From Paramicrosporidium saccamoebae KSL3 (lineage: Eukaryota > Fungi > Cryptomycota): 32,000 nucleotides of DNA. Made by a program: the position numbers and the translations under genes. Below are positions 12,386 to 32,000 of this stretch, piece by piece. Below the pieces are notes generated by a model. That model was not told the origin of the DNA, ran no database searches, and saw nothing but the letters and a program-made list of their open reading frames with translations. The stretch spans positions 44,484 through 76,483 of the forward strand of contig MTSL01000174.1 of assembly GCA_002794465.1 (NCBI GenBank), in the 5' to 3' direction. The stretch's first letter is position 1; every line of letters begins with the position of its first letter.

Positions 12386-14040
12386 ATGTTTCTTGAGCGC
12401 AAGCCCAAGTTCCGTAGTCGGAAGTTGGACTTTAACAGAGTACTGCCCGTGTATCGACATGACGAGGTGGACGATTTTGACGAGTTTGAGGAGCCCACAA
12501 GATCCGTGGCGCAAGTGGCAACTGGAGTAGACAAGGAAGAGGAGGATGTAAGGAGCAGTTGAGAATGCTGACATTATAGGAACATCACTTGAAGCAGGCC
12601 TTGACCCAGTCCAGTAGGTCGCAGGCCTATTACATTCCCACTCCGGAGGCGGCGCAGGCGTCTGAATCCTACCAGGAGATATACAAGGCTGATTTTAAGC
12701 AGCCAAAGGCCTATGCAAAGTGCGGTCCAGATGATCCATTGCAGCTGTTTCCAAAATATAATGGCGATCATATTGACGAGACATTTATCGACAATCTTCG
12801 AAAGGAGGGTGTGATTGACGCAAAATTTGATCTGACCCTGTACGAGTGGATTGTGGATTGTCTGGAAGATGCGGCGCACAAGTTTAGCGAGAACATTGCC
12901 AGTAATGAGTCACTTGAGAGGCTTCGGGATCGACACTCTGCTGCTTTGCCAGAAGAGGCCACAGTAAACAAAATGATTGAACACTGGAAAGAGCGGCGGA
13001 TTCAACAACGGAGGATCATTCCAACCCTGCGACATGAAGACCTGGGCAAGATTGGTGCCGACCCTTATGTCTGTTTCCGAAGGAGGGAGCTGAAGATTCC
13101 TCGAAAGACCAGACGAAGCGACGCTCAGATCACTGATCGACTGAAAAAACTGCACTTGGATCTGTCGTCCATGAAGCTGATGCTACATGCTGCAGCGAAG
13201 CGAGATCGGTACAAGAGAGAAGCATTGGTTTTGGAGGGCGAATTGTTTGAAAAATACCGACTTGTGGATAATTGGAGGAAACATCACAAAAGTGACTGGC
13301 CACCCCATCTGGCTACCTTTAAAATTGCTGCACAGAGTCTTTTGGAGCCCAAGAAGAAAAAGAGTCGCATTGAAGGCGATACGCTAGATGGACTCATTGG
13401 TGCCTACAAGATTGCAATTCCGGTGGCGGCTCTGAAGAGTTCGCGACATGGGCGGCCATATTATCCTCACGAAGTGGGACGGATGATCCAGAAAGATATG
13501 GATATTTTGTTGGGACATCATGGAAACCAGGATGCCCTGACGGACGATTTCTGTCCCGATTTTCGAGACCTTTCTGGCCAGGACTTTTATAATTCGCCCT
13601 GGCTCCATGGACAGCCGGTTTCGTTTCGAAGGGGACGGGGTGGTCGTGTAATTGTGGATCGGCCAAGGATTAGCATCCCACCAACCCGCCCTCTCCAGGA
13701 TCTCTCGGATCCGGCCATCATCAAGTTCCACTCCACCCTCCTCACAGCCAAAGATTTTACCCAACTACAGACCCCCGTCGGCAATTACAACGTTCATGCC
13801 GTTCAGACTGCCAACCAAATCCTGCGTCCCATGTCATATCAGGCGTGGGTGGCGTCTACGGCGCCCATCCTGGTGGCTCTCTCTGGGAAGCCGCGCAGTC
13901 CAAAAAAGAAAAGAGAGGATGGCGGGGCACAGATTACGGTCAAGGTGAAGAGTCAGCCAAAGGAGGCCGCGCGGAGGGGCACGGGGGCGAGATTTACGCC
14001 GCACGGACTGGCGCCAGAGTCTAACGATGATGGTAAATAG
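12386..14040 (+). CDS. EPL1: Enhancer of polycomb-like protein (NuA4 subunit), 2 exons, about 540 aa
   Basis: Exon 12386-12547, a 32-nt intron (GTAAGG...CTGACATTATAG), and exon 12580-14040. The product has FRSRKLDFNRVLPVY, ATGVDKEEED|EHHLKQAL, YIPTP, HWKERR and DPYVCFRRRE. Confidence 0.92.
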
Positions 14041-14101
14041 AATTCCGCATGAATGTATTTTATATTTATTTTGTGTGGGTGCCCAGGGTCGGGATTTCGC
14101 C

Positions 14102-17100
14102 ATGGACCAGTTAGAGAGGGCGTGGCAGGAGGTGGAGGAGTCTGCCCGGAACGGCACCTTTGATCCGCGTTCCCTCAACAAGGCGATGCGCTCCTATCTG
14201 GAACGACCCTCTGTTCTTGATGCATCGCGTATCATTGACTGGTGCCACCGTCTCTTCACAAGCACTCTGCCTCTGGACGATATCCTACTCGTTGTATGGC
14301 AGATTCTCTATACAGTTGCACCCCAAACGTCCTTTGAATCGACAGGTACGTGGATGACTTTAGGTAGGGAACGGGCGAGACTGATATTGGGATTGGCCAC
14401 ACCAGAGAATGTCTCGGGCATATTGGCGTTCCTTGTTGCGACTGTCGAGGAGGGTGGACTGAACACAGTGTTGGCGGCAACTATCATGGAGGTTGCTGAG
14501 CGGGTGGCCCGACAGTTTGGATTTAGGGAAACGATGCTGAGACTGGTGGAGGGGGTGGGGAGTAGCAAGGATGAGCTGGTCCTGCACAAGATACGGTCCT
14601 TGGTTGTGACACTGTATCGATCCAATCCACCACTAGAAAATAGGACAGCCTTGGACCGAATCTTGCAAGGAATTGACAGAGATGTCAAAATGAAATATCT
14701 CTTGCTCAAAGATCTTCTCGAATTTGACATTAATGTCCCCGGATTCACTGATCCGTGTCTACAGGATTTGCTTGTGTGTCTCGACGACAAGACTCTTGCT
14801 CCCTCCGTCTCTGAGTGCATCGTCTTGTTGGTAAAACTCAAAGGATACAGTCTCGTGGATCTTGTGGACGAAACGGGCCAACTGGGGGTCTATTTATTTC
14901 CTAAATTGGTACGCAAGCTCCCCAATGAGGCGATTGCGTTGCTGCAAACACTGGAAAGGGCGGCGTTGGAGGAGAGCACTGAACCGCGAATCTTGCAATA
15001 TTGCTCGCTGTACAATTCCATTTTGGGAGGTGAAATGCAACATCAGCCCCTGAATATGGTTCTGGCAAAGCGTGGATTGGTTGCCCATGATGAGATTCTC
15101 TGCAATCGAGCCTTTTCATGTCTCTGTCGTTCTTTCCACACCGACATGCCCTTTTCCGAAGGCGACACTGTGTATAGATTCCTTGTGGATGCTCAGATTG
15201 GGGTCACGGCTGATAACAGACAGCAGACGATTGCATCGTTGAAACAACTGGTGGAAATGCACTTTGCGCGACTCTACAAACTAGAGCGGGCCATCATGCG
15301 TGGTGAAATCCAAGAGACGGAATCTGAGGCGGCGGGAACTAAGGTATTGGATACAGAAATCAAGGCTATTATACAATTTTGGCGACGTATTGTAACACTT
15401 TCGGTAGAGTCTCTCACCGTTTCGGGGTATTACAACAAGAATGATCTCTGCATCAGAACACTTCTTTGCATAACTGAAGTTTGGAGGGAGAAATTGGCAA
15501 AGGTTACGGTAGAGTCACTTGGGCGTCGATTAGGTAATGTACATGAAACAATCATCGAGCCCCTACTACGGGATGATTTTATCAAGAGGATGTGTGAATG
15601 TGTGATGAACAATTCATTTGATACCGTAAGGGAGGGGGCTGCCAAGTTATTAAGATTGCTCAATGTCAAGTTTGATGCAGAATATATTACGGCGGAGCTC
15701 TTGCCAGCTTTGGCTGTACAGAGGGCGCATCTTATTGATGGAGCATCTCGTCTACTTGGTGTGTATTGTGATAAAATGAACAATCATAAGGAAGTGGCTG
15801 CTCTGTTGACAACGGCACTACAGGATGAAATTGCCAAATTGTCAACATCAGACGCCCTTGCCAATAGTCAAGCACTCGGCCTCATGGCTGGTCTGAGGTA
15901 AGGAATAAGGATTCGGGGTTTAACCTGTGTTTAGGGAACTGATGGCAAAGCCTGTCGATGCGGAAAATGTCTTGAAAATTGTCGATTGTTGTCGCCAGTT
16001 AGGTGTTCTTGTCACTGATTTTGTTTCACATCCATCGCCTGAGGGACATTTAGTGAATGTTGACGACGACGAAGAGGATGATGACATGAGCTTTTCCATT
16101 ATGACTTTTTGTTGGCGAGCTGTCAAGGAGAGCAGTGCATTGCTTGCCTGTTGTCTCTGGAGGATTGAACGAATGGACGTTGCTTTGTTGGAACAGACGG
16201 CGCGATATTTGGTGGAAATGCTATTAAAGATTCGTCATCCGGGTGCATTCATGTCGCTTGCCAAACCGCTCCGTGATGTTTGCCAGATTTGCTTCTCCCT
16301 TGGCAATGATGCGTCAAGAATTCCACAAAAACTGTTAAACGAGGCAATGGAGCAATGTGTCCTCCATCCAGAGGTGCAGACTACAAGACGCAGTGCAGGA
16401 CTGCCCGTCTGCATTGCCGCCATTGTGACGGCATCAAAGGACGCCCATCGACGCTGTAAGCTGCTGGGTGAGGCATTTGAGACGCTATTGTCGGTGATTC
16501 CAACTTTGGTATTCCAGCAAATTGCCCCTGATCCGCATGTGGTGCACACACTCAACATTCTCCGACAGCTATTTCGAGATTCTACGCTTGCTGAAGATGT
16601 CATCGCCCTCCTTCCCACTGGTTTCCGCCTCTGTTTCCTGGCATTTGGATCGCCAAGTTGGTCAGTTCGCAACAGCGGGATGATGCTTTTCACTGCACTA
16701 ATGAATCGCACTTTTGGAGTGAGACACGACACAGAAGAATATGCCAAGGGGAATTTGGTAGATGTGCGCAATCTGCATGCCCAATGCCCTTCCATCCTAG
16801 GTCTAATCATGGAAGAATGTAGTAAGAGCGTCCAGATGCTTGGAAACGAAGCGTGCTCCAGATATCAGATCGAGTTTGCCCTCTATCCTTTGCTGTCATT
16901 TATTCAGAGAATCCGATTCTCCATCGGTGGGGAGGCCCGACACACTGGCTTTTACACTGCTGCCATTGCATTTTGTTTGGGGTGTCTTGGGAGTGATATT
17001 ATGAAGGTGCGAAAAATGACGGCTCGATTGGTGGCGAATATGTGTGAGAGTGTGCTGATCAAGACGTTGACTTTGGATTGGATTGAGAATACATTGGAGA

Positions 17101-17771
17101 CTGGATGCAATCAATTGCACGGCTACTTATTGCTACTGAGAATACTGTATGATCAAAAAATTATCCAATCGGATATTTACGAACGACTAAATCGCATTCC
17201 TGATGGATTGGTTTGCTATCCACTGCAACAAATGCTCTGCCCTGATGTGTCAATTAAGGCAGAGGATGATGTGCCCATTGCCACGATTATCGAAAATGTG
17301 ACTGCACGTAGGTTACATCCAGAAGAAATTGTCATCCAAGTGCCTCGACTTGTTGAACATGCCATTTCTAATGAGCCATCGTTGTTTGCATTGTTGGAGA
17401 ACTTTTGGCTTGATTACGATCTCTCTGGGGAGTATCGATTGGCCATTGTCAAAGCTCTTCGTCCCTGCACGCATCCGTCTGTCCTGCGGCTACGCTACCT
17501 TGCCCTCACAGACGATTCCTACGAGATTCGGCAAATTGCATCGGGACCCCGTCTTGGTGCGTCGGCATCAGTTGCTCAATGTCTCCGGACGATTATCACC
17601 AAAGTGGGTGATTTAATGGATTACTTGCCGATCAGTGAAGAGGTGGATAGTGGAAGGAGAAAGTTGTTTGAACCGGAACCCTTGAATAGTTTCAAAGATC
17701 CCATTTGGGAGAGAGAACGCCTAAGCGAACAGCAACCGTGTGTAAACCAGCAATCAACCATAATACACTAG
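14102..17771 (+). CDS. TRM732: THADA/Trm732 (DUF2428) tRNA 2'-O-methylation cofactor, 2 exons, about 1210 aa
   Basis: A 37-nt intron at 15898-15934 (GTAAGG...TTAAC...TTTAG) joins two long ORFs in phase. DUF2428 motifs include CWRAVKESSALL, IRHPGAF, TTRRSAGLP, VHTLNILRQLFRDS, WSVRNSGMMLFTALMNRTFG and LYPLLSFIQR. Confidence 0.9.
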
Positions 17772-19104: not shown

Positions 19105-20007
19105 ATGGCGGGAACATTGGTGTGTCCGTTGTATTGCGAACAAGATGGCTCTCGGCACAGCTATCCATGCGAGGGCGACCTTCTTGTCAAGGGAGGGATT
19201 GTCTCCACGTTGGAAGGAGATGAGCTGCTGACGCAGGACGAATTGGGTTCACTGGCCATGGAATTGGATGAAAATGAATACCACACCCTGCACATTTACG
19301 GAGATGGCGTGTCGGATGAATTGAGGAGGATGTTGCAAACTGTTTTTCCGATTGTGCGGGTCAACGAGGAGCCAACACAATTGTGTGTTGTCGATAAGGT
19401 TGAAATTGTCGTCGACGCCATCACTGAAGACCATCCCTCCCTGCGACCATTACTGTTCCATCTCCGCAATGAACTTGTGCAGACGGAATATCTTGGAGAG
19501 ACGACAACAGTGGATGATTGTTTCCTGTCGCCGGTTCGACTTGCATCCATTGGGACGGGACTGTTTCGACTGGGCTTTAAATGCCAGCCAGACCGTCTGT
19601 ATCTTATGGGAGACGGACGACTAATTGAACCGGCCTTTACCGCATTGTTTGCAAGGCATCACATGCCCGCTCCACTGCCGTCCCAGCCGCTGCAGCCTCC
19701 CTCCCAGGCCTCGCTCTTTGATGAGTCGTGTTCCCTGCAATCCTGGACACCCAATCTGCCGGATGTTCCAGACACTCCAAACACGACAGATGCAAAGACA
19801 GCCAACAAAACCCGTCTCAAAAAATTAATGCTTTTGTCATTGCGCCATGTTGGGGTGGACAAGAATCATTGTGAATTCCCCTCCATCTGGAAGCATCTTT
19901 ATTGTGGATGTCTTTTTGCATTGCGAAAGGAGCTGGGAGAGACGGTAGCACAGAGTGAAATGTTGGCAGTGATTCGTACAAACATGAATTTCCTCAATAT
20001 AAACTGA
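19105..20007 (+). CDS. 300-aa protein with a C-terminal Sld7_C/MTBP-like helical domain (tentative replication-initiation factor)
   Basis: Single open ORF between DIB1 and CTK1. The C-terminal NKTRLKKLMLLSLRHVGVDKNHCEFPSIWKHLYCGCLFALRKEL resembles the recalled Sld7 C-terminal pattern (NK..L..LILAGLR.YG....EF..IY...Y....FALRK). The N-terminus is not recognised. Confidence 0.6.
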   Translation: MAGTLVCPLYCEQDGSRHSYPCEGDLLVKGGIVSTLEGDELLTQDELGSLAMELDENEYHTLHIYGDGVSDELRRMLQTVFPIVRVNEEPTQLCVVDKVEIVVDAITEDHPSLRPLLFHLRNELVQTEYLGETTTVDDCFLSPVRLASIGTGLFRLGFKCQPDRLYLMGDGRLIEPAFTALFARHHMPAPLPSQPLQPPSQASLFDESCSLQSWTPNLPDVPDTPNTTDAKTANKTRLKKLMLLSLRHVGVDKNHCEFPSIWKHLYCGCLFALRKELGETVAQSEMLAVIRTNMNFLNIN

Positions 20008-25711: not shown

Positions 25712-28381
25712 ATGGATCCATTTGGCCGCTATGATCGACGCTCAAGCAGTGACGAAATCCACGGACATCGACGTTCCCACTCTGTGGCCTATGGAGGGGA
25801 TCGCTACTACGGCTATGATCCACGCTATCGTCCGCCCCCATACTATGCAGCAGCATACCAACACCACGACAGCTGTCTTGGCGGCTGCGGGATGGACCGT
25901 CGGTCACGTCGAAAGGTGCGAAATTGGCTACTGCTGCTAGCTCTTGCAGCCGTAGTGGGTTTCCTGACATACCGACGTCTGGGCGGAGCAGACATGAAAA
26001 GTCGACTAACTGAAACGACGATTGAGAACATTATTGACGAGGTAATGGGGAAGAGCATAACCCGACCTGAAATGATTGTGCCCCCAGATGCAGCGCCAAA
26101 GGTACGGATGGCCAAGCAGTCAGCGCCAGAGAAGGAGCGACCGCCCAACCCAGAGGAGCGCGACATTACTGACAATGATCCGCTGGATATTCCGCTCGTA
26201 AGAGAGTCCCCTCCCGTTGCTGCCAAGAAATTAGCCGAAACACTCGTTGCCCTGGATAATCAACCAGAGGAGGGAGAAGAGGGAGGATTGGAAGGGAGAA
26301 AATTGGCAAAACAAATTGAACCAATCGCTGATCTCCAAAAGATGTTGGGGGTGGGCGAGGCATCTCTGCAAAAGTTGAATGAGCAAATTGAGGAACTGAC
26401 GAGGAAACTATCAACGCAATCCCAGATGGTGGAGGACCTGCAACGCGGTCTTTCCAACGATCAAGGCCCTGTCTATGGCGCAGTGGATACACGTTCTGAT
26501 CGTGGAATGGCCGAATCGACAATGGGACAGGATATGCTGCGTCAGTTGGGAATCAAATCGAGGAATGGAGCAGTCCCAAGACCAGCACCCCCGCCCATCC
26601 AGGATCCAGTAGGACAGAAACCCTTTTCTCGTCGCGTGACATTCAGCAACTCGCCCGTCTCTTCGGTTGTGTGCACGGGATCCGATACGGTGGATCGAGT
26701 GTGCAAGATTAAGAACCTGTGCTACGACCCCAGCAAGGATCGCTTCTTCATCTTCAAGGATGTGTCGACCTTGGAGGTGGGAGTTCCCAAGAATCGCACC
26801 TATTTGGTGGATTCGACTTCCATTGACGGCCACAACAAATTTGCATTTGATTACAGCGAAGTGCATCCAGACGCCTTCCGTCAACGCACTGTGGAAATGG
26901 TCGATCGACCAACATTTATGATCAGTCGTTTCCATGCGCTCAACATTATGCACACCATCCACGATGACTTTTTGGGTCTGTACGGGCTGCATCGCATGTT
27001 TGCAAGCAGTGACGAGGTGGACGAGCGTTTCGTCTTTAGTCGCAACAACCACATCCTCTTCCTCGACTCTTTTGAAAACATTCGCTACGATTACGTCTTC
27101 CAATTCCTAACGGACAATCCCTTGCAATTCCGTCAGCGTCTACACGAGAACAATCCTAGAAGCGACACTCCCATTTGTTTCCGTGATGCTGTGGTTGGAA
27201 ACAGCAAAGTCGGCTCATGGTACAGCTACGGCTTTTTGGAGCCTCAGGGTCCCATTGCCAACAAAACTGTCTCGGGATTATATGTGCGGGATGCAGCACG
27301 TTTCCTCATGAACCGCATGGATCTGCCTCTTTGGGATGAGATCACTGTGCGTAGTACCATCCAGGAACTCTATCTGCGCAAGATGAAGCGGGAACGCGAG
27401 GGAAAGCCCCGTTCCAAGGTGCCATTGGCCACAGATCAAATGTTTATTACCGTCTTTTCTCGTCAGCTCGATCGTCTTATGGTCAATGAGGCCGAGGTCA
27501 TCAATGGACTGCAGGACACTTATGGATTACCAGTACGGACGGTGCGTATGGAAGACATGCACATTGGTCAACAGGCTGCCATCCTGCGCTCTACTGCCAT
27601 TGCAGTTGGAGTACACGGCTCCGCCCTCATCCTCTCCATCTTCCTCCCACCCGGCGCCATTCTCATAGAGCTCTTCCCCTATACTGTGCCCGCTGAGAAT
27701 TATACACCCTATCGCACCCTTGCTTCTCTACCCGGAATGCGACTTGCCTATCGCGCCTGGACCAACAAACGCTCCGAAAACAACTATCCTCATCCGGAAC
27801 GGCCTCCTTCCGGCGGTGGTATTGCCCATCTTCCCCTTGTTGAGCAGGAAAAGATCAAGAACACTTTGACTGTGCCTCCTCATCTCTGTTGTCGTGATCC
27901 CTACTGGCTCTATCGCATCTATCAGGACACCAGGGTCGAATTGTCAGAGCTCTACGATGCCATTGACGATGCCTTTGCTGATTCGCTCAAGCTCCTCGAT
28001 ATTTCACCCCAATCCTTCGTTGCCATCCGACCTGGCATCATTGATACTGTTCGCTGTTCGGTACGTGCACCTCCGGGTCTTGATCATTCCAAACTCACCA
28101 ATACCACCCAGCTGCAGATGGATATTAGCTGGGATGAGCCCTGGAACGGCGTCCAGCCCGACAAGTACGGCATCTGGATCCATCAGCCCTACCAAGAGTT
28201 CTTCAGCACCTCCCCCATGCTTGAGCCTCCCAAGTGTGCCTACGGCAGCAAGTATGACATTTGGGTGAGGTCCTATGTCGCCGTCCCCAACACTGATGGT
28301 CTCATCAAGAGTCAATACTCGGAAAAGTTTACTTGTAAGTGTATCCCAGAGACCAGGGCGCAGCGTGGTGACGAATCCTAG
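25712..28381 (+). CDS. POMGNT2: POMGNT2-like protein O-mannose beta-1,4-N-acetylglucosaminyltransferase (GT61 + C-terminal FN3), type II membrane, about 889 aa
   Basis: A single TM segment (WLLLLALAAVVGFLTY) is followed by a long stem. Catalytic-region motifs are CKIKNLCY, RFHALNIMHTIHDDFLGLY, CFRDAVVG, FSRQLDRLMVNE, HGSALILSIFLPPGAILIELFPY, YTPYRTLASLPGM, HPERP..GGIAHL and VPPHLCCRDPYWLYRIYQDT. An FN3-like tail follows (PGIIDTVRC...ISWDEPWN...YGIWI). These match recalled POMGNT2 motifs rather than EOGT. Confidence 0.88.
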   Translation: MDPFGRYDRRSSSDEIHGHRRSHSVAYGGDRYYGYDPRYRPPPYYAAAYQHHDSCLGGCGMDRRSRRKVRNWLLLLALAAVVGFLTYRRLGGADMKSRLTETTIENIIDEVMGKSITRPEMIVPPDAAPKVRMAKQSAPEKERPPNPEERDITDNDPLDIPLVRESPPVAAKKLAETLVALDNQPEEGEEGGLEGRKLAKQIEPIADLQKMLGVGEASLQKLNEQIEELTRKLSTQSQMVEDLQRGLSNDQGPVYGAVDTRSDRGMAESTMGQDMLRQLGIKSRNGAVPRPAPPPIQDPVGQKPFSRRVTFSNSPVSSVVCTGSDTVDRVCKIKNLCYDPSKDRFFIFKDVSTLEVGVPKNRTYLVDSTSIDGHNKFAFDYSEVHPDAFRQRTVEMVDRPTFMISRFHALNIMHTIHDDFLGLYGLHRMFASSDEVDERFVFSRNNHILFLDSFENIRYDYVFQFLTDNPLQFRQRLHENNPRSDTPICFRDAVVGNSKVGSWYSYGFLEPQGPIANKTVSGLYVRDAARFLMNRMDLPLWDEITVRSTIQELYLRKMKREREGKPRSKVPLATDQMFITVFSRQLDRLMVNEAEVINGLQDTYGLPVRTVRMEDMHIGQQAAILRSTAIAVGVHGSALILSIFLPPGAILIELFPYTVPAENYTPYRTLASLPGMRLAYRAWTNKRSENNYPHPERPPSGGGIAHLPLVEQEKIKNTLTVPPHLCCRDPYWLYRIYQDTRVELSELYDAIDDAFADSLKLLDISPQSFVAIRPGIIDTVRCSVRAPPGLDHSKLTNTTQLQMDISWDEPWNGVQPDKYGIWIHQPYQEFFSTSPMLEPPKCAYGSKYDIWVRSYVAVPNTDGLIKSQYSEKFTCKCIPETRAQRGDES

Positions 28382-28545
28382 ATATTTTGTATGTAAAAAG
28401 TCCTTGATACCTATATATGGACCATTTTCGATGTAATTGATTGTTTTTTGCGTTACCAAAAAAGATTTTATCAAAGTATCGGCAGTCTGTAATCCACCAA
28501 TCTTGAATTGCTGCTTTCGACAGTTTAATCATTGAAATCTACAAT

Positions 28546-29094
28546 TTATTCATTTGTTGGAGCTTCCTCTTCCCATAGTTCATATTGCTTCTTCTTTTTC
28601 TTAATAATCTCATCGGCTTCTTTTAGCATTGCTGCAAGATCTTCCTTCTTTACTGCCCAGCGAGGATCAATTGTGGATGGTGCCTTTGATGTCGCAGCGG
28701 GCTTGGCTTTGCCAGGTCTTCCCACTGGTAGAGGCCTTCCTAGCACTGGTAGAGGTCCTCCTGGCACTGGTAGAGGTCCTGGCGCTGGCGGTGGTCCTCC
28801 TCCTGGTGGTGGTGGTCCTCCTCCTGGTGGCGGCGGTGGTCCTCCTCCTGGTGGTGGTGGTCCTCCTCCTGGTGGTGGTGGCGGCCTTCCTCCTGGTGGT
28901 GGTGGTCCTCCTCCTGGTGGCGGCGGCGGTCCTCCTCCCGGTGGTGGTGGCCCTCCTCCTGGTGGCAGTGGCGGCCTTCCTCCTGGTGGTGGTGGTCCTC
29001 CTGTTGCTACCGGCGGTTTATTACCAGCTGCTTGGGAGAGGCCATAAAAACCGACCATAAGCAGCGCTTTCGAGGTGACATTGTCCCTCTTCAT
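28546..29094 (-). CDS. Predicted secreted Gly/Pro-repeat protein with a Lys-rich C-terminus (about 182 aa)
   Basis: ATG 29094 starts MKRDNVTSKALLMVGFYGLSQAAG (weak signal peptide; the track start 29229 is GTG). GGGPPPP(P) repeats precede a charged helical tail (KEDLAAMLKEADEIIKKKKKQYELWEEEAPTNE). The stop overlaps AATAAA. Confidence 0.7.
   Translation of the reverse strand: MKRDNVTSKALLMVGFYGLSQAAGNKPPVATGGPPPPGGRPPLPPGGGPPPPGGGPPPPPGGGPPPPGGRPPPPPGGGPPPPGGGPPPPPGGGPPPPGGGPPPAPGPLPVPGGPLPVLGRPLPVGRPGKAKPAATSKAPSTIDPRWAVKKEDLAAMLKEADEIIKKKKKQYELWEEEAPTNE
28724..29000 (-). repeat. Coding tandem repeat: three 21-bp ACTGGTAGAGG units, then alternating 21/24-bp CCT/GGT units (45-bp higher-order period)
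   Basis: CCTCCTCCTGGTGGTGGTGGT alternates with CCTCCTCCTGGTGGCGGCGGTGGT-like units across about 28795-29000. Confidence 0.9.
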
Positions 29095-29581
29095 TGTGCC
29101 ATCCGTCCATTCATGCGCCGTGGATATAGTCCACTCCGCACCAATGGGATTTCGAGAATGCATTTCATGCTCGATTGAGTCTTTGGTGCCTTTGGAGGTT
29201 TTATCATTAAATAGAATCGAGTTGGCCACTCGAGAGTGTATTAGGGATACATGGCTTAATGAATAGTCCTTCTACAATTTGACCATTTCTGCATCTTTGT
29301 ATTTTTACTTTACCCCCAACGAGTCCCTATTGGTTCGGTCTTGTCCAATCAACCGACAGCTCTGCCTGCGTCTGGGCTCTATTCCTGTCTGTCCAATCCA
29401 ATACAAGCACTTTTCCGGATAAAAGATGGTGTATTCAGGGAAACTGGTAAAGGGGGATAGAATCTCTACAATGTGTCATGTCGTACATAGGATCAATGTC
29501 AAGGGCCATTTGACTCGCGACATGAGCTCTAAAGTTATCAACAATTAGTATTGTTGCCCTGGCTCAGCACCACGGACCGCG

Positions 29582-32000
29582 ATGGTGTGGGTTGTGATCC
29601 TCATTTGGCAGAGTTTTGTGTGCGCTAAGAGAGAAACTTTTTGCCGTGACCATAACGGCCAAATAGTGGATTGGTGGGTGCTATATAAAGAAGCTAAGGG
29701 ACAACGGTACACCTACTTGTCATCAAAGAGTGCAGCAAATGGCAAACCAATTACGGCGCCGCTACGAAACGATCGGTTGGTAACAGATCCAGAGACGTCG
29801 CCTTTTCTAAATACTGTCTATGGCAGTAACCCGTACACGGAAGAGGAACAGAGCGACTCTGAGTCTTCAGATGCAGAGGATAATCGTATGATATTGGCCT
29901 GGAACGACCAACAGCCAAAGGGATCTACCAGGCCAGCAAGAGGCACTTCGTCTTTCCCAGTTATGAATAAGAGGTCAAAAAAGCACGAACAATACATAAA
30001 TGTGATTGATCCGAATCTGGAAGAGACTAAGCTGGGAGATGGCCAGGACATGTATGGATGGGGAGAAAATGTTCTGTTTGCTCATTCAAAAGGAATCTTG
30101 GGTATGAGCGTCAAAAAAACCAATACAAAGAAGGGTATGGTGAATTTCTACTTGATCACTCATTCGTTCCCTAGAACACCAAACGGTATTTGGGAAGAAA
30201 ACGGAAAATATCCGATCAAGCGGAGGTATGTCAGCAAACCAGAAGACTTTTTTGGCCATAATATTACTACTCCCCAGAACAAGGCCCAGCATGCAATGTG
30301 CATTTCCATGACCCAAGAAGTGAAGCTTAAGAAGGGAGAGATTGTCTTTGATCGTGAACAACTAGATCGGAAATCCATGAATCTCTTTTCTATTCTTAAC
30401 GGACTGGACGTCATCGGACCGTCTCTGACTCTGACCAATTACGTTCCCTATTTGGAGAGGTTCAAGGTTTACCATCAACTTTTCAATATTACCATTAAAT
30501 GGTTTTCAAGAGACCCGGCAAAGCTAAGACCATTTTTTAACCCCAACGTGGCACGAATCATCCCCCAAGATATGCCCTCAAGCGCAAAGGATAATGAATC
30601 TTCTCATGCGTTTCCGCTATGGCCGTCAAGATCACGTGTGAAAATTGTTAATGGAAATAAAGAAAAGACGACAAGCGGAAAGCAAGATGTTAGTCTCCGC
30701 AACCCGCAGCAAATTTATGCAACTCGCTGTCAGGCATGGGATGCCTCCGGGCCCCGCCGTGATGCTGGCTGCTACACCTCTGCTCGCCTGACGTCAACAA
30801 ACTTTCAGTCACAGATTGTCTTTGATGTTGATTTCAAGAATGCCCTCGTGAAGGCCGACACTGATGATTTTATTGCCGCCAGATTAATTCCAAAAGATGA
30901 CCTAAATCTGGCCAAGGATGGAACCGTGCTACCAGCCAAAAAGTACGTATCATTAATGGTGGTCACACAATCATGGTTTGATCACGCTACCCTTGGTTCG
31001 CATCCAAGAGAAATCATTAAAAACGACAAGCTGCAGGTCAAAGTATGGTTTCATAACAATCTCGGTATTCGTTTGCCTTGTAGCACTGTTAAATCCCATA
31101 CTGTCAAACCCGGTAAACCAGTCCTCCAACCCTCAAATGGCCAAGACCATTCCAAATGGTTTGTAACCTATTTGTATGGCCAAACGGGTAATTTTGTTCC
31201 TCTTGCCGGTGTTATGGACCTGAATCGAAATGCAAAAGCCACGCAGCTACAGGGTCGTGAACAGGGTCGTGGTGGAATGATATTCTTCACCACTCACCAA
31301 GCCTTTGTTCGTTTCTTCATGTCTTTCTCTCCAATCCTCGAAGATAACACCAACTTTAGCAACGTTCCCATTGATTTTTTTACTAAGAAGCACTTGCAGG
31401 AGAGTGATAATGAAAAGATGGCTACAGTTACAGAGTTTAGTAAAGAGGGGACTCAAATTACCCTCAAGTTTAAATCTCTTGACAATTTATTCAAGTTTCT
31501 CCTGCCATACTGTGCCATTCCTGATGCCGCAACAGCTCCACTAATTCCAAGAGACGAGATAAGTGGCACGGACAAGAAAAAGACACGAAAAAAATCAAAG
31601 TCAAATTCAGAATCAGGGTCAGACTCAAGGTCAGGATCCGAATCCGGGTCAGAATTAGGGTCAGGATCAGACTCTGAAACAGAACCCAGATCCAAGTTAC
31701 CAAAATTTCTGCTTGGATCACCAGGATTCAGACCGACTCCTTTTACCCCCTCTAGAATGCATAGACCGCCCGAACCCAGAATGACTAAAGACGAGTATGA
31801 TGAGGAGGATGAGGACGGGGACGAGGATGAGGACGAGGACGAGGATGAGGATGAGGATGAGGACGAGGACTCCTCAACTTCCAGTTTTGGTGGCTTAACG
31901 CGAAAGAAACTAACCTTTTCACCGGCTCTAAAGGTACCGATCGGAAGAAAACAACCTGTTCGAAACACTTCAGTAAAACCTAACGCCAAGGCCACAACGA
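29582..32000 (+). CDS. DNASE2: Secreted deoxyribonuclease II (PLD superfamily) with insertions and a long basic/acidic C-terminal extension; 3'-partial, at least 806 codons
   Basis: Absent from the ORF track. I translated it by hand: open from ATG 29582 to the window end. Signal peptide MVWVVILIWQSFVCA, then CRDHNGQIVDWWVLYK..YTYLSS, AWNDQQP, first HxK AHSKG (30083), LITHSFPRTP, AQHAMCIS, second HxK QDHSKW (31148) and DLNR...GRGG. All of these are DNase II family motifs in the expected order. Confidence 0.88.
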   Translation, partial: MVWVVILIWQSFVCAKRETFCRDHNGQIVDWWVLYKEAKGQRYTYLSSKSAANGKPITAPLRNDRLVTDPETSPFLNTVYGSNPYTEEEQSDSESSDAEDNRMILAWNDQQPKGSTRPARGTSSFPVMNKRSKKHEQYINVIDPNLEETKLGDGQDMYGWGENVLFAHSKGILGMSVKKTNTKKGMVNFYLITHSFPRTPNGIWEENGKYPIKRRYVSKPEDFFGHNITTPQNKAQHAMCISMTQEVKLKKGEIVFDREQLDRKSMNLFSILNGLDVIGPSLTLTNYVPYLERFKVYHQLFNITIKWFSRDPAKLRPFFNPNVARIIPQDMPSSAKDNESSHAFPLWPSRSRVKIVNGNKEKTTSGKQDVSLRNPQQIYATRCQAWDASGPRRDAGCYTSARLTSTNFQSQIVFDVDFKNALVKADTDDFIAARLIPKDDLNLAKDGTVLPAKKYVSLMVVTQSWFDHATLGSHPREIIKNDKLQVKVWFHNNLGIRLPCSTVKSHTVKPGKPVLQPSNGQDHSKWFVTYLYGQTGNFVPLAGVMDLNRNAKATQLQGREQGRGGMIFFTTHQAFVRFFMSFSPILEDNTNFSNVPIDFFTKKHLQESDNEKMATVTEFSKEGTQITLKFKSLDNLFKFLLPYCAIPDAATAPLIPRDEISGTDKKKTRKKSKSNSESGSDSRSGSESGSELGSGSDSETEPRSKLPKFLLGSPGFRPTPFTPSRMHRPPEPRMTKDEYDEEDEDGDEDEDEDEDEDEDEDEDSSTSSFGGLTRKKLTFSPALKVPIGRKQPVRNTSVKPNAKATT

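Follow-up and report, generated by a model that had tools for sequence, protein, structure and literature searches.

The window analysed here, a 32,000-nt stretch of contig MTSL01000174.1 of Paramicrosporidium saccamoebae, ends in a long open reading frame that bears on a question left open by the genome paper of this organism, namely how the parasite obtains its nucleotide building blocks. According to that paper, P. saccamoebae has no de novo purine or pyrimidine synthesis, no NTT transporters and no thymidine kinase, and its nucleoside transporters are highly expressed. Its authors speculate on the uptake and breakdown of host nucleic acids and also raise the phagocytosis of host material; DNase II is not mentioned in the paper or its supplements. 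In our view, the reading frame is paralog 1, the first of two long-form DNase II genes in tandem, and its product probably enters the secretory pathway and helps to break down host DNA for import as nucleosides. Two intact, selected copies of a much enlarged DNase II are kept here by a parasite that is obligately intranuclear and stands at the base of Fungi/Microsporidia, and a DNase that enters the secretory pathway would provide a concrete and testable first step in nucleotide acquisition.

The contig is 122.9 kb long and belongs to the P. saccamoebae genome (MTSL00000000; assembly GCA_002794465.1). Paralog 1 starts with an ATG at position 29,582 on the forward strand, 33 nt downstream of an in-frame TAG, and remains open for 806 codons up to the end of the window (29,582..32,000, + strand). 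The parent contig shows its end 125 nt beyond the window, with a stop codon at window-equivalent positions 32,123-32,125 and a full length of 847 aa, and both the complete ORF and its tandem neighbor were read on locus L009; the two genes fall within contig positions 74,065-79,710. The sequence-only reading that drew attention to this gene described it as missed by the ORF track. It is indeed missing from the in-window list, but the cause lies in the window edge: the lister leaves out ORFs that extend past the source sequence, and the same frame is listed whole on L009. The suggestion of Paramicrosporidium as the organism, made in the same sequence-only reading, was correct. The deposited annotation has a single 2053-residue product here that covers both paralogs and more; this model has no Pfam hit on record, did not come up in the homology searches, and probably fuses two or more genes. 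The deposited FA2H and GT61 gene models likewise differ from the products guessed here.

Paralog 1 is a real member of the DNase II family (phospholipase-D superfamily), as first proposed from its motifs. It scores 59.6 bits against the Pfam DNase_II profile (PF03265; cut-off 23, E 3.8e-16), paralog 2 scores 54.4 bits, and the profile is matched by eight of nine family members. The N-terminal PLD-like half of the nuclease domain (aa 21-246; 29,642..30,319, + strand) corresponds to profile positions 2-144 of 326 and aligns by hhalign with canonical DNase II, including the named Tetrahymena enzyme, with a probability of 99.5% (E 4e-22). The C-terminal PLD-like half (aa 471-564; 30,992..31,273, + strand), which contains DHSKW, DLNR and GRGG, matches profile positions 229-313; alone it reaches E 0.007 against these positions, and an hhalign probability of 84% (E 7e-6) against the canonical C-terminal half. 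Between the two halves the Pfam match skips profile positions 145-228, where the query covers aa 247-470.

Both HxK motifs, which had been called intact, are present and align with their canonical counterparts. The first (H168, S169, K170; 30,083..30,091, + strand) lies in AHSKG (A167-H168-S169-K170-G171, aa 167-171, nt 30,080-30,094), aligns to the canonical AHAKG/AHSKG, is invariant in 9/9 aligned family members, and corresponds to H100/K102 of the Burkholderia thailandensis DNase II (PMC5449587). The second (H523, S524, K525; 31,148..31,156, + strand) lies in DHSKW (D522-H523-S524-K525-W526, aa 522-526, nt 31,145-31,159), which lines up with the canonical DHSKW. Throughout the family H523 and K525 are invariant; the motif as a whole varies in some members (HCKH in P0007 and HSKF in P0006). 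The support residues W465 (in a QSW motif just upstream of the C-terminal half), W526, N548-R549 (DLNR) and R563 (GRGG) are conserved and follow the canonical order. W465, W526 and N548/R549 reproduce the conserved W-W-R trio that supports the second motif in the solved enzyme (PMC5449587), the correspondence to its W239-W282-R298 cluster and R305 being one of motif alignment and not of superposition. With H168/K170, H523/K525, W465, W526, N548/R549 and R563, the conserved active-site set is complete in paralog 1, which is apparently an active, DNA-cutting enzyme. The first canonical cysteine pair (C21/C240) is kept and the other two of the three pairs are replaced, the cysteines concerned being those in VCVGD, in GGxVC and at the C-terminal position. 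The protein also has both conserved sequons, N227-I-T and N591-F-S. The compact single-domain form of ~350 aa with three cysteine pairs is thus not matched by this insertion-split protein of 847 aa, a departure that we take to mark a variant architecture, not exclusion from the family. Since two of the three disulfide pairs are missing and an insertion of ~110 aa splits the domain, its pH or substrate behaviour may depart from that of canonical DNase II.

The N-terminus resembles a signal peptide, in agreement with the sequence-only reading. The putative peptide (aa 1-15; 29,582..29,626, + strand) reads MVWVVILIWQSFVCA and is followed by KRETFC, with cleavage predicted after VCA (V at -3, A at -1) by eye and hydropathy. 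Directly behind it comes the mature start KRETFCRDHNGQIVDWW, the canonical C21-x4-G-x2-VDWW, and hhalign pairs the protein, beginning at aa 17, with canonical DNase II from its mature N-terminus. Similar hydrophobic N-termini are found in all full-length homologs, among them P0001-P0003, P0005, P0007 and paralog 2.

Beyond the canonical core, several additional regions could be delimited. Length comparison defines a clade-specific charged loop (aa 113-166; 29,918..30,079, + strand), which includes NKRSKKH and lies between WNDQQP (aa 107-112) and AHSKG. The insert of about 50 aa noticed at this place is real: 54-56 aa separate NDQQP from AHSKG, compared with 9-15 aa in canonical DNase II. In most members of the Paramicrosporidium clade the loop measures 55-125 aa, P0008 with 29 aa being an exception, and in other long forms it measures 15-34 aa; its AlphaFold pLDDT is below 50. 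A family-specific core insertion of ~110 aa (aa ~290-402; 30,449..30,787, + strand), recognized from the gap in the Pfam profile and from family conservation, carries invariant H298, W307, H342, W347, C383 and C397; it is conserved within the family and of low confidence in the AlphaFold model. Past the end of the Pfam profile, a conserved C-terminal extension specific to the family (aa 588-645, NFSNVP...KEGTQITLKF...LPYC; 31,343..31,516, + strand) contains invariant F592 and P642.

The predicted structure has the two-lobed, PLD-like fold of DNase II. In a Foldseek search with the AlphaFold model, chain 5i3e_B (B. thailandensis DNase II) was the top match (E 1.1e-6, probability 1.00, target TM-score 0.51) and the only one at E ≤ 0.001, from a model of poor quality (mean pLDDT 50, pTM 0.64) built on an alignment of eight sequences only. 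Neither phmmer with the single protein nor the family profile found a DNase II among the PDB chain sequences.

The conserved sequence stops near aa 645 and gives way to a charged tail that is disordered and evolves fast (aa 646-806 inside the window; 31,517..32,000, + strand), recognized by paralog divergence, which runs on to aa 847 and ends in ...GGGSKSTRKHRK. The more than 200 extra residues described after the nuclease core hold up on the parent contig, where the tail extends ~200 aa beyond the conserved sequence. Across the family, tails range from 36 to 550 aa, most of them exceeding 100 aa. Three tracts had been singled out in this tail as functional modules, and their coordinates proved exact. 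The K/R patch DKKKTRKKSK (aa 664-673; 31,571..31,600, + strand), which contains KKTR/RKKS and conforms to the K-K/R-x-K/R pattern of a classical monopartite NLS, overlaps a tandem repeat of 11 bp and faces an alignment gap in paralog 2. The SG/SE/SD tract (31,601..31,684, + strand) consists of tandem repeats with periods of 6, 12 and 30 bp and is absent from paralog 2. The Asp/Glu run of 27 aa (aa 737-763; 31,790..31,870, + strand), within which lies the 24-residue Asp/Glu tract with one Gly (31,799-31,870), is built from a GAC/GAG hexamer and an 18-bp tandem repeat and has no counterpart in paralog 2, a comparison that rules it out as a conserved module. None of the three has a positional counterpart in orthologs, some of which have acidic stretches elsewhere. 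As DNA tandem repeats that are gapped against a 75%-identical paralog and not positionally conserved, the tracts lack support as functional modules and are, judging from these comparisons, recent repeat expansions. Because they are repeat-built, absent from paralog 2 and unaligned in orthologs, roles in nuclear import, DNA mimicry or histone binding stay speculative.

What does recur in the tail is one short motif, together with basic C-termini in some members (paralog 1, paralog 2, P0005, P0007 and P0129). The motif, FLLGSPGFRPTPFTPSRMH (aa 709-727; 31,706..31,762, + strand), has the consensus F-x-x-G-S-P/V ... [ST]-P-x-R/H-M, includes proline-directed Ser/Thr sites, and is kept in paralog 2 as FRLGSVKFHQTPYTPPRMR. 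It was found in 6/12 clade tails, whereas 2000 shuffles gave 0.08 on average and never more than 2.

Paralog 2 lies directly downstream of paralog 1. The two are 75% identical in the core and 31% identical in the tail. The dN/dS of the core is 0.185, and both paralogs are under purifying selection there; in the tail dN is 0.92 and synonymous sites are saturated. In a neighbor-joining tree, which carries no support values and includes hardly any named taxa, the two Paramicrosporidium copies pair as sisters. In the same tree, long forms stand apart from most canonical short forms, with P0191 (470 aa) placed among the long forms.

Homology searches define a rare, unnamed long-form DNase II subfamily, drawn almost wholly from metagenomes and characterized by the ~110-aa core insertion, the clade-specific charged loop and long disordered tails. 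This subfamily lay outside the view of the sequence-only reading, as did the 3' end, paralog 2 and the large core insertion. Only 86 matches were obtained among 1.84 billion representatives. None of the 24 clusters of long-form members has an informative name, and the only named matches are marginal canonical ones (Tetrahymena). A further word-index search with the family profile returned the same eight proteins as before. The sequences have diverged so far from canonical enzymes that the profile reaches these only marginally (E 1e-4 to 1e-6). Sources of the homologs include GCA_020049755.1, GCA_047514055.1, SRR28640811 and ERZ27237304. Scans for exact patterns added one further locus from metagenomes and, in bacterial and archaeal genomes, detected no long-form relative; both scans are weak as negatives. 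Gene order is also common to P. saccamoebae and related uncultured lineages: Mito_carr / GT61 / DNase II is kept at the P0003 loci, with Maf1, MPP6 and Sec3 downstream; P0001 too is followed by Maf1 and Sec3, and P0007 by MPP6.

The likeliest role of paralog 1 is the digestion of host DNA for nucleotide salvage. The protein would enter the secretory pathway and, by analogy with other DNase II enzymes, would cleave DNA by a metal-independent route via a covalent phospho-histidine intermediate, leaving 3'-phosphate ends. Two sites are conceivable: the enzyme could act in the host nucleoplasm once secreted, or inside the parasite, in a digestive compartment that receives ingested nuclear material. 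The breakdown products of host DNA would then be imported by the parasite as nucleosides, which PSACC_00918 and PSACC_02618 take up. The products of DNase II are 3'-phosphorylated oligonucleotides, from which nucleosides are reached only with phosphodiesterases and phosphatases. The scavenging of host DNA suggested at the outset is consistent with the published absence of de novo nucleotide synthesis. The genome paper also reports that nucleoside kinases are absent, and the salvage route is therefore incomplete as now understood.

Other explanations differ mainly in where the enzyme acts and in what they make of its tail. A housekeeping role in the endolysosomal system of the parasite, where a lysosomal or vacuolar DNase II would degrade DNA from phagocytosis or autophagy and the tail would be removed or irrelevant, seems rather unlikely; the gene would then be a retained marker of ancestral phagotrophy and no adaptation to the nucleus. 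As summarized in PMC5449587 from Shpak 2008, DNase II is usually lysosomal, its distribution follows phagocytosis, and it is absent from fungi-like saprophytes and intracellular parasites. The phagocytosis raised in the genome paper would fit such a role, and so would the sharing of the family and of its gene order with several uncultured relatives, which makes the gene older than any nucleus-specific lifestyle. On the other hand, a recent tandem duplication under purifying selection, the charged loop and the tail motif suggest functions beyond those of a minimal enzyme. Closer to the sequence-only reading, the enzyme would be an effector delivered into host chromatin, in which DKKKTRKKSK would serve as a nuclear localization signal and the Asp/Glu run would bind histones or mimic DNA. 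The K/R patch does match the import pattern, the acidic run is real, the parasite is intranuclear, charged tails are family-wide with recurring basic C-termini, and the conserved [ST]-P-x-R tail sites resemble a nucleo-cytoplasmic kinase site, not a lumenal feature. However, all three tracts are of the repeat-built, unconserved kind described above, acidic and basic low-complexity runs are common in fast-evolving disordered regions, and it is not obvious why a parasite already inside the nucleus should need an import signal, so that we regard this effector as unlikely. A related proposal that draws on the recurrent features is equally doubtful: the long forms of Paramicrosporidium and its uncultured relatives might be exported nucleases adapted to the host nucleo-cytoplasmic environment, in which the tail motif (resembling a proline-directed/CDK-type site), the basic C-termini and the clade-specific K/R-rich loop next to the active site would serve regulation by host kinases, binding to importin or chromatin, and DNA capture at neutral pH. 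If this were true, exported long forms would represent a class of fungal nuclease effectors that mine host chromatin for a parasite that cannot make nucleotides itself.

A change of function is very improbable, be it to a different phosphodiester substrate (RNA or a lipid head group, for example) or to a mainly DNA-binding, non-catalytic role. It would fit the large conserved insertion that divides the domain, the loss of two canonical disulfides, the profile search of PDB sequences that yielded no DNase II match, and the variation of the second motif in P0007 and P0006. Yet all residues known to matter for DNase II catalysis are invariant in the clade, pseudo-enzymes normally lose their catalytic residues, and the core dN/dS is low. 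Hardly credible is an artefact, in which the tail would be mis-assembled or non-coding, or the sequence would be a contaminant from the host amoeba or some other organism. The fused deposited model, with its lack of a Pfam record and its absence from the homology searches, might raise such a suspicion. Against an artefact, the locus is flanked by fungal-type genes whose nearest named relatives are early-diverging fungi, and its gene order matches that of independent assemblies. An assembly error producing the tail, which the sequence-only reading had itself named as a possible refutation, was checked and is excluded by the ORF, unbroken over 847 codons, by the comparably long tails of the paralog and orthologs, and by the conservation of the tail motif. 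Host-DNA digestion by a secretory-pathway DNase II remains the reading that we favour.

Compared with known systems, paralog 1 shares with canonical eukaryotic DNase II (PF03265; human DNase II-alpha and Tetrahymena thermophila P0187) a signal peptide directly before C-x-x-x-x-G-x-x-VDW, both HxK motifs, the QSW, HSKW, D-x-NR and RGG motifs, the first cysteine pair and the order of the motifs. It differs in its length (847 versus ~350 aa), in a loop before the first HxK that is ~45 aa longer, in the conserved mid-domain insertion of ~110 aa, in the additional conserved C-terminal extension of ~60 aa followed by a disordered tail of ~200 aa, and in the replacement of two of the three cysteine pairs, with a new conserved pair (C383, C397). 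The B. thailandensis enzyme (PDB 5i3e), the only significant structural match to the predicted model, has H100/K102/H279/K281 and the W239-W282-R298 cluster (PMC5449587), all with counterparts in paralog 1; it is 348 aa long without tail or insertions, shows 12% identity in the structural alignment, and is undetected from paralog 1 by phmmer or the family profile. The nearest functional analogy for a parasite that exports DNase II is Trichinella, an intracellular nematode with expanded DNase II genes that encode signal peptides and whose products occur in excretory-secretory material (PMC6230719). Duplicated genes are found on both sides, but the Trichinella enzymes belong to the animal lineage, have a near-canonical domain size and have undergone a large expansion, whereas P. 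saccamoebae has two copies. The true relatives are the long forms from metagenomes and draft genomes (P0001-P0008 and P0129-P0160), none of them named or characterized, which are 32-46% identical across most of their length and share the architecture of insertion, extension and tail, with a common gene order in the closest ones; their tails vary in length and composition, and the long charged loop before the first HxK is confined to the Paramicrosporidium clade.

The DNase II gene at the 3' end of the window (paralog 1, to which residue numbers refer) occupies a frame at 29582-32000 (+) of 806 codons with no stop before the window end, and an in-frame TAG lies 33 nt 5' of its first ATG. The sequence-only reading had reported it as missed by the ORF track; it is indeed absent from that listing, the cause being that the ORF lister drops ORFs running off the source. 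The 3' end was retrieved from the 10 kb flank (locus L009), where the ORF closes 125 nt past the window end, giving a full protein of 847 aa that ends in ...GGGSKSTRKHRK. That reading had also guessed Paramicrosporidium as the organism, correctly: the parent contig MTSL01000174.1 (122,864 bp; GCA_002794465.1) is from P. saccamoebae, whose genome has the accession MTSL00000000 (PMC5701793).

Paralog 1 matches Pfam DNase_II with 59.6 bits (cut-off 23), aa 21-246 aligning to profile positions 2-144, and its C-terminal part, scanned alone, matches positions 229-313 (E 0.007). When the profile of the long-form family (DNase II with a core insertion, a C-terminal extension and a tail) was compared with aligned canonical DNase II enzymes, among them the named one of Tetrahymena thermophila, probabilities of 99.5% (E 4e-22) and 84% (E 7e-6) were obtained for the N-terminal and C-terminal halves, respectively. 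The identification as a DNase II with both catalytic HxK motifs, AHSKG (aa 167-171) and DHSKW (aa 522-526), was borne out. None of H168, K170, H523 and K525 varies in the aligned long-form family, nor do W465 (QSW), N548-R549 (DLNR) and R563 (GRGG), and most members also keep W526 (P0006 has F, P0007 has H). The two HxK motifs, W-W-R cluster and conserved arginine of the solved B. thailandensis DNase II (PMC5449587) all have counterparts in paralog 1. The AlphaFold model of paralog 1 (8-sequence alignment) was poor (mean pLDDT 50, pTM 0.64), yet it had one significant PDB fold match, and only one: that bacterial DNase II (5i3e; E 1.1e-6, probability 1.00, target TM-score 0.51). No match was obtained when PDB chains were searched by sequence, with paralog 1 or with the family profile, which shows the great distance of paralog 1 from solved members.

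A tandem copy (paralog 2) begins approximately 430 nt 3' of paralog 1 on the same strand, just outside the window (window-equivalent 32560-35223; L009 143-2806, - strand). It encodes 887 aa with the N-terminus MSLFTTF..., a putative signal peptide in the same context as in paralog 1 and the two HxK motifs, and it scores 54.4 bits against Pfam DNase_II. The paralogs share 75% identity over the core (aa 16-645) and 31% in the gap-rich tail. By the Nei-Gojobori method, core dN/dS is 0.185 (dS 0.87), so that purifying selection acts on both copies; for the tail, dN is 0.92 and synonymous sites are saturated. The two are sisters in a rough neighbour-joining tree, which points to a duplication specific to the Paramicrosporidium lineage. 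The deposited annotation has a single 2053-residue gene model here, from window 29669 to beyond 35365 (L009 1-5697, - strand), beginning at a non-ATG codon (D30) in frame with the paralog 1 ORF; most simply, it is probably a fusion of both paralogs plus further sequence. Its product was absent from the matches of homology searches with paralog 1 and the family profile, and no Pfam match is on record for it.

Paralog 1 is a new, long-form architectural variant of the known DNase II family. Between NDQQP (WNDQQP, aa 107-112) and the first HxK it has 54-56 aa, compared with 9-15 aa in canonical enzymes, which bears out the insert of about 50 aa reported earlier. Most members of the Paramicrosporidium clade have a highly charged pre-HxK loop of 55-125 aa (P0008: 29 aa), and this loop measures 15-34 aa in other long-form clades. 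Large low-complexity insertions of their own are seen in relatives: in P0001, the pre-HxK loop carries about six copies of KSKRDKKMEKS (aa ~120-180). The Pfam match jumps over profile positions 145-228, where paralog 1 has aa 247-470, and a single conserved insertion of ~110 aa (roughly aa 290-402), judged by eye, makes up the bulk of this surplus; it has invariant H298, W307, H342, W347, C383 and C397, for which AlphaFold gave no usable model. P0008 has an insertion of ~370 aa (aa ~470-840) with poly-Asp and Ser-rich stretches in the core between DDIIASRI and QSW. Compared with canonical DNase II, paralog 1 also has a conserved extension of ~60 aa (aa 588-645) after the domain, followed by a disordered tail of ~200 aa, and retains only the first of the cysteine pairs (C21/C240). 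The N-glycosylation sequons N227-I-T and N591-F-S are kept in position in paralog 2 and most relatives.

When 1.84 billion representative proteins were searched exhaustively with the family profile, only 86 matches had E <= 0.001, including 32 at E <= 1e-30; strong matches were mostly 600-1270 aa long, and canonical ~350-aa enzymes reached marginal E-values only. None of the long-form members looked up had an informative name. Pattern scanning added one metagenomic locus and detected no long-form relative in bacterial/archaeal genomes. The nearest relatives of paralog 1 are 32-46% identical to it. Several homologs of 500-700 aa (P0159-P0167, P0171, P0172 and P0181) start with MG[LVI]K..., the residues right after the first HxK, and as called have neither the N-terminal 170 aa nor the first catalytic motif; their gene calls may be truncated, or they may form a subgroup that is half inactivated. 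At the loci of the relative P0003 (L004, L005, L006 and L007), the gene order is Mito_carr (-), GT61 (+), DNase II (+), then Maf1, MPP6 and Sec3; Maf1 and Sec3 also lie downstream of P0001 (L003), and MPP6 downstream of P0007 (L001). This local gene order, shared with some uncultured relatives, argues for a long residence of the DNase II gene in this lineage. The relative GCA_020049755.1 (L001) has its own tandem DNase II pair, with copies merely 36% identical and a DIM1 gene directly upstream.

The window also has ORFs for ordinary eukaryotic proteins: cactin, THO2, THADA/Trm732, a GT61 glycosyltransferase, a mitochondrial carrier, an RRM protein and a Sld7-like protein. The nearest named relatives of the fatty-acid 2-hydroxylase gene are from early-diverging fungi (~40-43% identity). 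The THADA/Trm732-like gene (12589-17771, +) is split into three successive ORFs (12589-14040, 14027-15901 and 15927-17771), and therefore short introns or frame breaks are implied. A 300-aa ORF (19105-20007, +) has a weak match to the C-terminal domain of Sld7 (24.4 bits; cut-off 23.2); this factor acts in replication initiation and is known best from fungi. A region open on both strands (28532-29229; 171-aa ORF, +; 227-aa ORF, -) contains 4.8 copies of a 45-bp tandem repeat (28787-29002) whose translation is Gly/Pro-rich, (GGGPPPP)n. In the deposited GT61 model (1043 aa, 25712-29047), the + strand repeat reading seems to have been spliced onto the glycosyltransferase; the GT61 gene in L004 ends without this repeat.

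The tail of paralog 1 contains a K/R patch, DKKKTRKKSK (31571-31600, +), an SG/SE tract (31601-31684, +) and a 24-residue Asp/Glu run (31799-31870, +). All coordinates given in the sequence-only reading proved exact, and these tracts are present; a role for them as NLS-like and acidic functional modules was not supported. All three overlie tandem DNA repeats (period 6-30 bp), fall in gaps of the alignment to paralog 2, from which they are absent, and have no counterpart by position in orthologs. Judged on these grounds, the tracts arose by recent expansion of repeats and say little for dedicated functions, and we regard the NLS and acidic-module model as unlikely. Charged long tails are common to the family (36-550 aa, mostly >100 aa; some with 22-32% Asp/Glu), and strongly basic C-termini occur in both Paramicrosporidium paralogs, P0005, P0007 and P0129. 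A tail motif, F-x-x-G-S-P/V then [ST]-P-x-R/H-M, was found in 6 of 12 clade tails (2000 shuffles: expected 0.08, maximum 2); its TPSR/TPPR element can be read as a match to [ST]-P-x-[KR], the consensus of proline-directed kinases.

The long-form DNase II bears on the open question of this parasite's nucleotide supply. According to its genome paper, P. saccamoebae has no de novo purine/pyrimidine synthesis, and the NTT nucleotide transporters and the thymidine kinases found in its relatives are missing; its nucleoside transporters are highly expressed, and the authors speculated that it takes up and degrades host nucleic acids (PMC5701793). Their paper makes no mention of DNase II, and a literature search for DNase II in Microsporidia or rozellids found no paper making the link. 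A duplicated DNase II with intact catalytic residues and a putative signal peptide could plausibly be the enzyme that begins the mining of host DNA, whose breakdown would feed nucleotide salvage. We consider this general salvage model reasonably probable; that the gene is a purely housekeeping lysosomal DNase II seems rather unlikely, a DNase II with changed function is very improbable, and an artefact is scarcely credible. Overall, the observation made in the sequence-only reading was confirmed, and its interpretation was supported in part. For salvage, the host nucleoplasm, reached by secretion, and a digestive compartment of the parasite would fit the data equally well: the former has an analogy in the DNase II enzymes that Trichinella secretes (PMC6230719), and the latter matches the classical association of DNase II with phagocytosis (PMC5449587).
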